Assembly: GCA_964188305.1 (NCBI GenBank)
Contig: OZ076895.1
Origin: Podarcis bocagei
Lineage: Eukaryota
DNA: 64,000 nt
Reading direction: 5' to 3' (one strand)
The notes below the pieces were generated by a model. That model saw only the letters and a list, made by a program, of their open reading frames with translations. It had not been told where the DNA came from and made no database searches. How positions within the stretch are numbered: the stretch's first letter is position 1; each line of letters opens with the position of its first letter. A program made the position numbers and the translations under genes. Shown piece by piece: positions 1 to 17,470 of this stretch.

Positions 1-521
1 TTAATTACTTGAGGGATATCTTGAGTGATTTCTTGAGTGATATTCTGAGTACCACTTAGGAGGGTCATTAGGTGTGGATTAGTTGCTAAAGCTTTCGTGT
101 CTTGACCTCTTGAGTTTGTGAAGAGGTTTTTCTGAGAAGATGGCTGTACTGCACTTAGTTGTGCTCTGGCTTGGCTTCGTGTATAGGGGCGAGCTGTGGT
201 TTTGTGCCCTGTGCCAGCCAGATCTGTGTAGGGATTGCAGGGGGGTGCAGCATCCGGAGGTGCCACTATGGTTTGGCTACTGGATGGTGTCTGTAATTTA
301 TCTGTGGAGAGGGTCTGGGTTTGGGTCTGGTGTGGTTGATTGGAGATGGCGTTCTGTGTGCCTCTGGTTCTGGTGTCGGTTTTTGTGGGGAGGGCTATTT
401 TCCAGATGTCTGGCAGGCGGGACGTATCGTCACGCTTGTTCATGTTGTGAGGGTGTTTCTCTATCTCGATGGCTTCCATGATTATTCTCTTGTGGTGATG
501 TTCCATGTTGAAGAGCAATTT
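1..521 (-). mobile_element. Penelope-like element (Poseidon-type), 5'-truncated 3' part, minus-strand copy; continues off the window start
   Basis: Reverse complement of 522-1020. Read on the minus strand from 521 it encodes KLLFNMEHHHKRIIMEAIEIEKHPHNMNKRDD, matching the C-terminal R..EAIEI...N.NR motif of PLE GIY-YIG endonucleases. Confidence 0.85.
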
Positions 522-1020
522 ATCACCACAAGAGAATAATCATGGAAGCCATCGAGATAGAGAAACACCCTCACAACATGAACAAGCGTGACGATACGTC
601 CCGCCTGCCAGACATCTGGAAAATAGCCCTCCCCACAAAAACCGACACCAGAACCAGAGGCACACAGAACGCCATCTCCAATCAACCACACCAGACCCAA
701 ACCCAGACCCTCTCCACAGATAAATTACAGACACCATCCAGTAGCCAAACCATAGTGGCACCTCCGGATGCTGCACCCCCCTGCAATCCCTACACAGATC
801 TGGCTGGCACAGGGCACAAAACCACAGCTCGCCCCTATACACGAAGCCAAGCCAGAGCACAACTAAGTGCAGTACAGCCATCTTCTCAGAAAAACCTCTT
901 CACAAACTCAAGAGGTCAAGACACGAAAGCTTTAGCAACTAATCCACACCTAATGACCCTCCTAAGTGGTACTCAGAATATCACTCAAGAAATCACTCAA
1001 GATATCCCTCAAGTAATTAA
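1..1020. repeat. Long inverted repeat (palindrome): arms 1-499 and 522-1020, 22-nt spacer
   Basis: Position i pairs with 1021-i (ttaattactt at 1-10, aagtaattaa at 1011-1020). The ORF track shows identical mirror ORFs 140-481(+) and 540-881(-). Confidence 0.97.
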
Positions 1021-1262
1021 TGAACAAAAGAAGAAAAGGCACACTAACCTGGGAACTTCCTCTCTGCCCAGAACGTTGGAGGCTATACACCACACCCCCT
1101 CAACAGTATTTATAGGAACTCAAACACTGAGATCCTGCTCTGTTCCAGTAACAAGAAGCCGAAAGCACCAGCCTGAAGATGACGAGTGAGACCTCGTCGA
1201 AACGTCGCCTAGACACCCCAACTCTTACACGGGAAGACACCCGAAGACACCAAAACCTGCAT
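522..1262 (+). mobile_element. Penelope-like element, 5'-truncated plus-strand copy (GIY-YIG C-terminus plus pseudo-LTR with ribozyme motif)
   Basis: Frame of ORF 542-1189 reads (HHKRII)MEAIEIEKHPHNMNKRDDTSRLPDIWK, followed by a CTGAAGA...GAAACGTC motif typical of PLE pseudo-LTRs. Confidence 0.87.
1173..1206 (+). ncRNA. Minimal hammerhead-ribozyme-like motif, copy 1
   Basis: CTGAAGA (1173-1179), T, stem GACGAG / loop TGAGAC / CTCGTC, GAAAC, GTC (NUH triplet 1204-1206). Helix III is essentially absent and helix I is weak. Confidence 0.75.
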
Positions 1263-1270
1263 ATATATAT

Positions 1271-1396
1271 ATGCAGGTTTTGGTGTCTTCGGGTGTCTTC
1301 CCGTGTAAGAGTTGGGGTGTCTAGGCAACGTTTCGACGAGGTCTCACTCGTCATCTTCAGGCTGGTGCTTTCGGCTTCTTGTTACTGGAACAGAGC
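1271..1396 (-). mobile_element. Inverted Penelope pseudo-LTR copy 2
   Basis: Reverse complement of 1137-1262, with one mismatch seen (1206 C vs 1327 A). Confidence 0.9.
1327..1360 (-). ncRNA. Minimal hammerhead-ribozyme-like motif, copy 2 (GTT triplet variant)
   Basis: Minus strand reads CTGAAGATGACGAGTGAGACCTCGTCGAAACGTT. Confidence 0.72.
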
Positions 1397-1539
1397 CAGT
1401 AACAAGAAGCCGAAAGCACCAGCCTGAAGATGACGAGTGAGACCTCGTCGAAACGTCGCCTAGACACCCCAACTCTTACACGGGAAGACACCCGAAGACA
1501 CCAAAACCTGCATTCCTGTACCCGTGAAAATCTACGAAA

Positions 1540-1541
<2 letters not shown>
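1396..1541 (+). mobile_element. Penelope pseudo-LTR copy 3 with the longer 3' end
   Basis: Repeats 1145-1262, then continues tcctgtacccgtgaaaatctacgaaagc before the (TA)n tract. CACGGG...CCCGTG could pair. Confidence 0.88.
1424..1457 (+). ncRNA. Minimal hammerhead-ribozyme-like motif, copy 3
   Basis: Identical to 1173-1206, 251 nt downstream. Confidence 0.75.
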
Positions 1542-17332: not shown

Positions 17333-17470
17333 ATCCTAGAATTGTAGAGTTGGAAGGGACCACAAGGATCATCTGGTCCAATGCCCTGCAATGCAGGAAT
17401 CTTTTGCCCAAGGTGGGGCTTGAACTCACAGCCATGAGATTAGGAGTCTCATGCTCTACTGACTGAGCTA
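17333..17470 (-). mobile_element. tRNA(Lys-like)-head SINE with CR1-type tail (Squam2-like)
   Basis: Minus strand: tagctcagtcagtagagcatgagactcctaatctca...gagttcaagcccc, then ...ccttccaactctacaattcta. Confidence 0.8.

Follow-up and report, generated by a model that had tools for sequence, protein, structure and literature searches.

A run of three hammerhead motifs in a lizard genome as a probable insertion scar of a Penelope-type retrotransposon

Three near-identical copies of a hammerhead-like motif, in +/−/+ order, lie near the start of the stretch of Podarcis bocagei DNA analysed here (64,000 nucleotides, hereafter the window). A preliminary description of this DNA, made from its letters, read the triplet as a possible self-processing RNA switch, or as a retrozyme-like unit from which two sense ribozymes would release a 251-nt RNA able to circularise. 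The locus thus raises the question of whether closely packed ribozymes on both strands constitute a dedicated RNA device, or whether they are what a transposable element leaves behind when it inserts. We believe that the cassette is likely to be the insertion scar of a Poseidon/Penelope-type retrotransposon in an (AT)n microsatellite, and not a dedicated RNA device. The sections below set out the repeat structure, the class of the ribozyme and of the element that carries it, the positions at which the element copies end, and the behaviour predicted for a transcript.

Layout of the locus

Repeat computation and a string scan bore out the three copies, their order and their coordinates, as the preliminary description had them. 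Copies 1 and 2 do form a spacerless 260-bp palindrome at 1137–1396, whose arms (1137–1266 and 1267–1396) are each 130 nt long and 99% complementary, with one mismatch and a spacer of 0, and whose centre is an (AT)6 run at 1261–1272. The second palindrome that had been described, formed by copies 2 and 3 at 1271–1513, was recovered as well; its 118-nt arms (1271–1388 and 1396–1513, again 99% complementary with one mismatch) enclose a 7-nt loop, AACAGAG, at 1389–1395. Read as direct repeats, 1145–1262 and 1396–1513 are 100% identical at an offset of 251 nt, and copy 3 extends 28 nt (1514–1541) beyond the extent of copies 1 and 2. The single arm mismatch, a CpG-to-CpA transition at 1327, is the sole difference among the three copies. 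Here hammerhead 2, on the minus copy, has GTT (GUU in RNA) where copies 1 and 3 have GTC (GUC), and the H17 rule is still satisfied.

The 34-nt ribozyme string occurs at 1173–1206 (+), 1327–1360 (−) and 1424–1457 (+) and nowhere else in the 64 kb, compared with an expectation of 0 from 100 shuffles; three ribozyme-bearing copies are far above chance. A looser pattern, CTGANGA...GAAAC, searched for on both strands of the 64-kb window, returned no sites beyond these three, and Tandem Repeats Finder reported no array at the locus other than (AT)n.

The triplet belongs to a larger structure, in that the first 1.5 kb of the window contain three palindromes, all of them perfect or nearly so. The simplest reading of positions 1–1605 would be two separate head-to-head insertion units adjacent in one microsatellite, unit X (1–499, a 22-nt spacer, 522–1262) and unit Y (1271–1388, AACAGAG, 1396–1541); one complex event would be another way to obtain them. 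Copy 1 would then be the plus arm of X, and copies 2 and 3 the minus and plus arms of Y, respectively, with a remnant (AT)6 between the units and (AT)32 to the right. The features, named according to this reading, in which PLE stands for Penelope-like element and PAc for the Poseidon element of Anolis carolinensis, are as follows.

1–499, minus strand: minus-oriented arm of insertion unit X, an inverted 3′ part of the PLE ORF, 100% complementary to 522–1020
500–521, minus strand: 22-nt spacer at the head-to-head junction of unit X, element sequence; the reverse complement of 1–521 reads in frame, KLLFNMEHHHKRIIMEAIEI...
522–1262, plus strand: plus arm of unit X, a 5′-truncated PLE comprising the GIY-YIG end, the ORF C-terminal tail, the hammerhead and the first 82–84 nt of the next ORF (assigned from ORF 542–1189, relatives P0003–P0005 and the PAc motif)
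1173–1206, plus strand: minimal hammerhead 1, composed of CUGAAGA, U, GACGAG, loop UGAGAC, CUCGUC, GAAAC and GUC, with a predicted cut after 1206 (minimal hammerhead features of PMC4209133)
1261–1272, no strand: (AT)6 at the centre of the tail-to-tail junction, taken to be what is left, between units X and Y, of the target (TA)n microsatellite; other family copies pass from the same point into longer (AT)n
1271–1396, minus strand: minus arm of unit Y (copy 2), its element 3′ end at the first reverse transcription (RT) start site (+82–84) and adjoining (AT)6, its 5′ end at the equivalent of base 1137 (repeat computation)
1327–1360, minus strand: minimal hammerhead 2, with GUU for GUC via the CpG-to-CpA change at 1327 (string and regex scans)
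1389–1395, minus strand: 7-nt loop AACAGAG at the head-to-head junction of unit Y, element sequence equal to the reverse complement of 1138–1144
1396–1513, plus strand: plus arm of unit Y (copy 3), identical to 1145–1262 (direct repeat, 100%)
1424–1457, plus strand: minimal hammerhead 3, predicted cut after 1457 (string match)
1514–1541, plus strand: 28-nt ‘tail’, the stretch of the element from one RT start site to the other, found on this side alone and ending at +112 from the ATG at 1430 (PAc start sites, family ends)
1542–1605, no strand: (AT)32, the target microsatellite on the right flank

Three details of the junctions bear on how these boundaries are drawn. The outer AT on each side of (AT)6 could equally belong to the element, and a single C at 1396 is common to both arms of unit Y. 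Both head-to-head spacers (22 nt at 500–521 and 7 nt at 1389–1395) are element sequence in minus orientation, so that in both units the minus arm reaches slightly further 5′ than the plus arm. At the left edge, the right complementary arm of unit X stops at 1020 because the left arm begins at base 1 of the window; the left arm, cut by the window edge, probably continues leftward into a fourth, minus-strand hammerhead outside the window.

The hammerhead motif and the element that carries it

The minimal hammerhead ribozymes (min-HHRs) of metazoan PLEs have an extra nucleotide after A9, a conserved G10.1–C11.1 pair, a long helix II, a palindromic 15.2–16.2 stretch without a loop 3, and a short helix I (Cervera & de la Pena 2014, PMC4209133). 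In the three copies considered here, the catalytic boxes read CUGAAGA...GAAAC followed by GUC in copies 1 and 3 and by GUU in copy 2, which conforms to C3-U-G-A-N-G-A9, G12-A-A14 and A15.1...U16.1-H17. As in the PLE motif, an unpaired U after CUGAAGA precedes a 6-bp helix II (GACGAG/CUCGUC) that is closed by G10.1–C11.1 and carries a 6-nt loop, and this helix is present in every minimum free energy fold of a single copy. The motif originally written for the locus, CTGAAGA-[6-bp stem, 6-nt loop]-GAAAC-GTH, was right in its boxes, stem and loop and lacked the one unpaired U between CTGAAGA and the stem. Helix III is absent, ACGU being palindromic with no loop 3, again as in PLE min-HHRs. Helix I comprises at most 2–3 bp, since only a G–C and a C–G pair are contiguous and a third pair needs one bulged base; in PLE min-HHRs it is ∼4–5 bp long, and 2 bp in a D. 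virilis variant (PMC4209133). Judged from their letters, the ribozymes of this locus belong with the PLE min-HHRs in all features but one, a clear helix I.

No match to the Rfam hammerhead models (types I, II, III, HH9 and HH10) was obtained in the whole window at the gathering score, nor in positions 1000–1700 at E ≤ 10. We attribute this to the lack of helix III and to the short helix I, and the covariance-model search that the preliminary description had put forward as a check is consequently uninformative for such a motif. Sub-threshold Rfam matches to miRNA hairpins, which fell on the palindromes, were set aside as artefacts to which perfect stems give rise. When two ribozyme segments were cofolded with nearest-neighbour energies, no intermolecular ACGU helix was predicted, an outcome that is uninformative for a fold dependent on tertiary contacts. 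When the family variants of two species were compared, the 34-nt core had 0 variant sites against ∼1.7 expected, which is not a significant difference.

The ribozyme sits at the junction between the end of one ORF and the start of the next. The upstream ORF, open from 542, stops at a TGA at 1187–1189, within loop II, while the ATG of the next ORF lies at 1179–1181 in copy 1 and at 1430–1432 in copy 3, within the ribozyme at the start of helix II; the predicted cut site is 25 nt past this ATG. The PAc ORF likewise opens at stem II, with a cut site 26 bp beyond its start codon (PMC11167929). The repeated unit is, as in PAc, the end of a PLE ORF, a hammerhead and the first 82–112 nt of the next ORF. 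What had been termed a ∼120-nt PLE pseudo-LTR is indeed a hammerhead-bearing PLE repeat; it is not a non-coding LTR, for it is coding at both ends.

The identity of the element was approached through the upstream ORF. Pfam returned nothing meaningful for the 225-aa ORF fragment, and a phmmer search against 1.84 billion proteins gave only 17 matches, all of them short fragments, with no full-length RT-EN protein found. In the relatives P0003–P0005, which have a GIY-YIG domain (21.9–22.1 bits for P0004 and P0005 against a cut-off of 22.6, and 16.9 bits for P0003), this domain ends exactly where the match to residues 5–35 of the translation begins. A motif, EAIEIxKHxxNxN...IW, is common to the upstream ORF and the PAc C-terminus, and within it MEAIEIEKHPHNMNKRDD...DIW of the upstream ORF parallels REAIEIHKHVDNFNRKEE...KIW at the PAc C-terminus (PMC11167929 supplement). 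By these similarities the upstream ORF encodes the C-terminal tail of a GIY-YIG protein, of which only the domain end has been kept as a result of 5′ truncation; the RT domain is missing as well, and there is no further copy of the element elsewhere in the window. The layout, the GIY-YIG relatives and the PAc C-terminal motif therefore identify it as a 5′-truncated EN+ PLE of the Penelope/Poseidon type, which we take to be a young element of a lacertid lizard.

Origin of the arrangement and fate of a transcript

The positions at which the copies end are informative about how they arose. In copies 1 and 2 the last element letters are ctgc(at), at +82–84 from the ATG, and the two copies face each other across (AT)6; copy 3 extends to +112, where (AT)32 takes over. 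Each of the three element 3′ ends thus adjoins (AT)n, and the 28-nt tail is present on one side only. In vitro, PAc nicks AT-rich DNA on both strands and extends both; it has two internal start sites for reverse transcription on the RNA, of which the principal one lies 111–118 nt into the ORF, and the optional 30–40-bp ‘tail’ of genomic PAc copies is the stretch between these two sites (PMC11167929). In a by-eye alignment, +112 at the present locus aligns with PAc +115, and it falls within the 111–118 interval. More generally, PLE insertions are recognised by 5′ truncation, partial tandems, an adjacent inverted 5′-truncated copy, a tail that is often at one end and a preference for (TA)n (Craig et al. 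2021, PMC8557442). The locus displays 5′ truncation, inverted partial copies, a tail at one end (here 28 nt) and a (TA)n target.

We also looked at how other copies of the family end, using DNA contigs from two lizard species together with RNA reads from one of the two. Some leave the element at the equivalent of 1272 into longer (AT)n (X1, 12 contigs; X23, 6 reads), and others end at 1541–1543, where AT-rich sequence follows, mostly (AT)n or (GTATAT)n. Because other copies end at the same two points, both ends are canonical for the family. The DNA runs consist of ∼60-nt contigs of a hugely multicopy family, and their reads fit several copies and not one locus. In the read comparison, the letters of the window agreed better with ‘organism A’.

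By analogy with the in vitro work on the anole element, we propose the following series of events. The element endonuclease would nick AT-rich DNA, in this case a (TA)n microsatellite, on both strands. Reverse transcription would begin inside the RNA at either of two fixed sites, +82–84 or +112 nt into the ORF, and two converging 5′-truncated cDNAs would be joined head to head, by template switch or snap-back. As the ribozyme lies ∼80–110 nt upstream of the RT start sites, even very short insertions would include it, which accounts for its presence in each arm; the packing of two head-to-head units into one microsatellite would then give the +/−/+ run. In unit Y, the plus arm has the tail and the minus arm is without it, and for this reason we favour joining of two cDNAs by template switch and rate a simple snap-back of one cDNA below it. 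Snap-back is still possible for unit X. The 100% identity of copies 1 and 3 also fits a single insertion event.

The preliminary description placed weight on the two hairpins being mutually exclusive. This is true by topology, and it follows from any +/−/+ arrangement. In a plus-strand transcript, hairpin A (copies 1:2) has a predicted folding energy of −267.0 kcal/mol and hairpin B (copies 2:3) of −249.7 kcal/mol, compared with −20 to −25 kcal/mol for a single copy alone. Folding had been suggested as a check, and it recovers the two exclusive hairpins; it speaks against a state in which both sense ribozymes are free, since keeping the antisense copy unpaired carries a predicted cost of 240.9 kcal/mol. 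Exposing the two catalytic cores alone as single strands is predicted to cost at least 40.7 kcal/mol, and exposing the core of copy 3 alone 4.0 kcal/mol.

These energies matter in view of the ribozyme class, as PLE min-HHRs that lack helix III are expected to be active only when two sense copies dimerise (PMC4209133; Lunse et al. 2017 as cited in PMC6765202). A dimer of the sense ribozymes cannot form in cis at this locus because the antisense copy holds one sense copy in every conformer. The order of transcription favours hairpin A, since copy 2 is available to copy 1 before copy 3 has been transcribed. In a transcript of the locus, should there be one, copy 1 would pair with copy 2 once the latter is made, giving ∼130 bp of dsRNA, and copy 3 would be left as a lone, dimer-dependent and therefore inactive ribozyme. 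A transcript of the minus strand would contain a single ribozyme flanked by two complements.

Two raw RNA runs of a related lizard contain family transcripts from both strands, mainly sense. At the family level, and at a depth of 10–40 at which weak cleavage would escape notice, these reads had no pile-up of molecule ends at any position, those equivalent to 1206/1207 and 1457/1458 included, and no joints or end pile-ups that would mark circular or linear monomer junctions. The family variant of that species differs from the window at many sites, and its reads are uninformative on this locus itself.

The proposal that the sense hammerheads cut at 1206 and 1457 under gating by the antisense copy, and that the resulting 251-nt RNA circularises into a viroid-like rod, seems to us highly improbable. 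Its arithmetic is correct, as the two sense GTC sites are 251 nt apart, the cores are intact in all three copies, and the hypothetical product is predicted to fold as a nearly perfect double hairpin (−247.0 kcal/mol linear, −243.9 kcal/mol circular). PLE pLTRs are now put forward as the source of animal retrozymes (bioRxiv 10.64898/2026.07.22.740005; PMC7229834), and the PAc hammerhead does cleave with its protein present; that same hammerhead needs the protein, however, is dispensable for insertion, as mutants still insert, and no RNA-seq ends map to its site (PMC11167929). A ribozyme without helix III needs two free sense copies, whereas the antisense copy leaves one, and both the cost of exposing the two cores and the early formation of hairpin A during transcription weigh against a switch; PLE min-HHRs, moreover, cleave poorly even as designed dimers (PMC4209133). 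The switch thus found no support. Neither did the retrozyme-like circle: animal retrozymes are head-to-tail tandem repeats, with a unit of 150–450 bp each bearing a hammerhead, that are expressed as circRNAs (PMC7229834; bioRxiv 10.64898/2026.07.22.740005), whereas here the two sense copies are separated by an inverted one, and no family-level read ends at the predicted sites. Known insertion behaviour of PLEs explains the arrangement with no function needed. To a combined version, in which the triplet is transcribed and cuts assisted by the PLE protein at both sense sites yield a 251-nt, almost fully double-stranded rod, linear or circular, that serves as a small-RNA precursor against the element, we give very little credence; if true, such a rod would be a ribozyme-trimmed hpRNA arising from the insertion errors of the transposon itself.

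The other two alternatives concern the reality of the palindromes and their possible effect. That read-through from a neighbouring promoter makes the locus a source of hairpin RNA, its 118–130-bp duplex being diced to small RNAs directed against the start of the PLE ORF and the ribozyme, we regard as unlikely. A duplex of −250 to −267 kcal/mol is predicted, family transcripts of both polarities exist in the related lizard, and in flies transformed with Penelope the inverted regions of rearranged copies are precisely where siRNAs map (PMC3681739); this precedent comes from insects, however, and a single locus would contribute little in a family with so many copies. Such RNA would be a by-product that has a silencing effect, and this would fit an origin as an insertion scar. 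If the locus is transcribed, processing of dsRNA would, by analogy with the flies, be a likelier fate than the 251-nt product. An assembly artefact, in which fold-back or chimeric long reads or mis-joined repeats of an (AT)n-rich region made one or more of the palindromes and the true locus is a single PLE 3′ end, appears to us quite improbable. The crowding of the three palindromes at the start of the window invites the suspicion, Craig et al. 2021 (PMC8557442) caution that PLE structures cause assembly problems, and the ∼60-nt contigs of this multicopy family provide no read or contig assignable across the locus. Yet every junction falls at a meaningful point, with RT start sites adjoining (AT)n and spacers made of element sequence, whereas a fold-back would break at random; the CpG-to-CpA change at 1327 is private to one arm; and the tail on the plus arm of unit Y, with none on the minus arm, is something that simple fold-back duplication cannot give. 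We therefore retain insertion of a PLE into an (AT)n microsatellite as the preferred explanation of the cassette.

Significance and relation to known systems

Taken alone, the locus matters little, being one more rearranged Penelope-like insertion. Its value is modest and lies in illustrating in vivo, in a second lizard lineage, what was predicted from in vitro work on the anole PAc: both RT start sites, the tail on one side, the AT-microsatellite target and the head-to-head joining can all be read within 400 bp. For this genome it suggests a working rule, namely that a palindrome flanked by (AT)n is a PLE insertion product when both its strands bear a hammerhead core. DNA instability is likely, too, at a 260-bp palindrome that has an AT centre and no spacer, and if transcribed such a palindrome is a likely source of dsRNA.

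The likeness to Avsunviroidae such as ASBVd, which the preliminary description had evoked in pointing to ambisense viroid-like RNAs, consists of a hammerhead motif in each polarity, of the helix-III-poor double-hammerhead type, and of a competing rod-like fold. The motif is indeed encoded on both strands. Viroid rods, however, are imperfect, and each of their ribozymes is built from both sides of the rod, whereas here each ribozyme faces its own complement; the locus is, moreover, a DNA-encoded transposon fragment with no replication implied. The viroid likeness is superficial only.

With animal non-LTR retrozymes the locus has in common two sense type-I-like hammerheads 251 nt apart, PLE-related sequence and a hypothetical product that is highly self-paired. 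It differs from them in having an antisense copy of the ribozyme unit between the sense ribozymes and in forming no tandem array. Retrozymes also mostly use canonical hammerheads with loop–loop contacts, unlike the motif found here. The locus is not a retrozyme.

The ribozyme itself does not differ in kind from PLE min-HHRs (PMC4209133; Lunse et al. 2017 as cited in PMC6765202): the core boxes, the extra nucleotide after A9, G10.1–C11.1, the 6-bp helix II, the ACGU in place of helix III, the implied need for a dimer and the opposite-strand pairs are all common to both. Pairs of min-HHRs on opposite strands, 100–700 bp apart, are known in PLEs (Cervera & de la Pena 2014, PMC4209133). The motif at the locus, known here from its sequence, is a species-specific sequence variant of this class.

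The closest known counterpart is a PAc-type PLE insertion with a complex inverted and tandem structure. Like PAc and other Penelope/Poseidon PLEs (PMC11167929, PMC8557442), the element has an ORF that starts at helix II and ends at the next hammerhead, a C-terminal GIY-YIG, two internal RT starts, a one-sided tail of 28–40 nt, an AT-rich or (TA)n target, 5′ truncation and an adjacent inverted copy. Unlike PAc, it is a lacertid member, its helix I is weaker at 2–3 bp, and two head-to-head units would share one microsatellite with a tail-to-tail (AT)6 junction. What the locus adds to the description of PAc is correspondingly small: the two units in one microsatellite, and the agreement in RT start sites and tail between the anole element in vitro and lacertid genomic copies.

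Palindrome at the start of the window

Positions 1–1020 of the window form a palindrome of the 3' part of the open reading frame (ORF) of the Penelope-like element (PLE), with perfect arms of 499 nt. Its spacer of 22 nt is element sequence in frame, in minus orientation. The right arm ends at 1020 because the window start cuts the left arm; the palindrome therefore probably continues leftward beyond the window, and this extension may include a fourth hammerhead, on the minus strand.

Two features lie elsewhere in the window:

17413–17470, minus strand: incomplete tRNA match covering model positions 8–63 (41.8 bits)
51009–51154: 146 consecutive N, either a gap or masked sequence

The acceptor stem is missing from the tRNA match, which probably represents a fragment of a tRNA-derived SINE rather than a tRNA gene.

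The PLE family and a Translin fusion model

The PLE family is common to several related species, with species-specific variants. Over 900–1545, the letters of the window agree with DNA contigs of one lizard species, organism A, and comparison with DNA and RNA of another, organism D, revealed about 10 fixed sites that differ. Copy number is very high in both.

The public protein model P0001 (268 aa), matched in a phmmer search with the translated ORF fragment, has a Translin-family domain (residues 52–165) fused to a PLE-like stretch with 91% identity to the final 105 residues of the PLE ORF (window 872–1186). P0001 is probably either a gene model that took in part of a PLE or the product of an exonised insertion.

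Sequences joined at the hammerhead border

In RNA reads from a related lizard, two distinct upstream sequences adjoin the element exactly at the hammerhead's 5' border, at 1421–1423 (equivalent to window 1170–1172). The joins lie before 1421 in 7 reads and before 1423 in 6 + 12 reads. These differing sequences could reflect a PLE subfamily with another upstream part. Alternatively, the joins could represent a splice junction, as in the Penelope intron of D. virilis, which ends at helix I.
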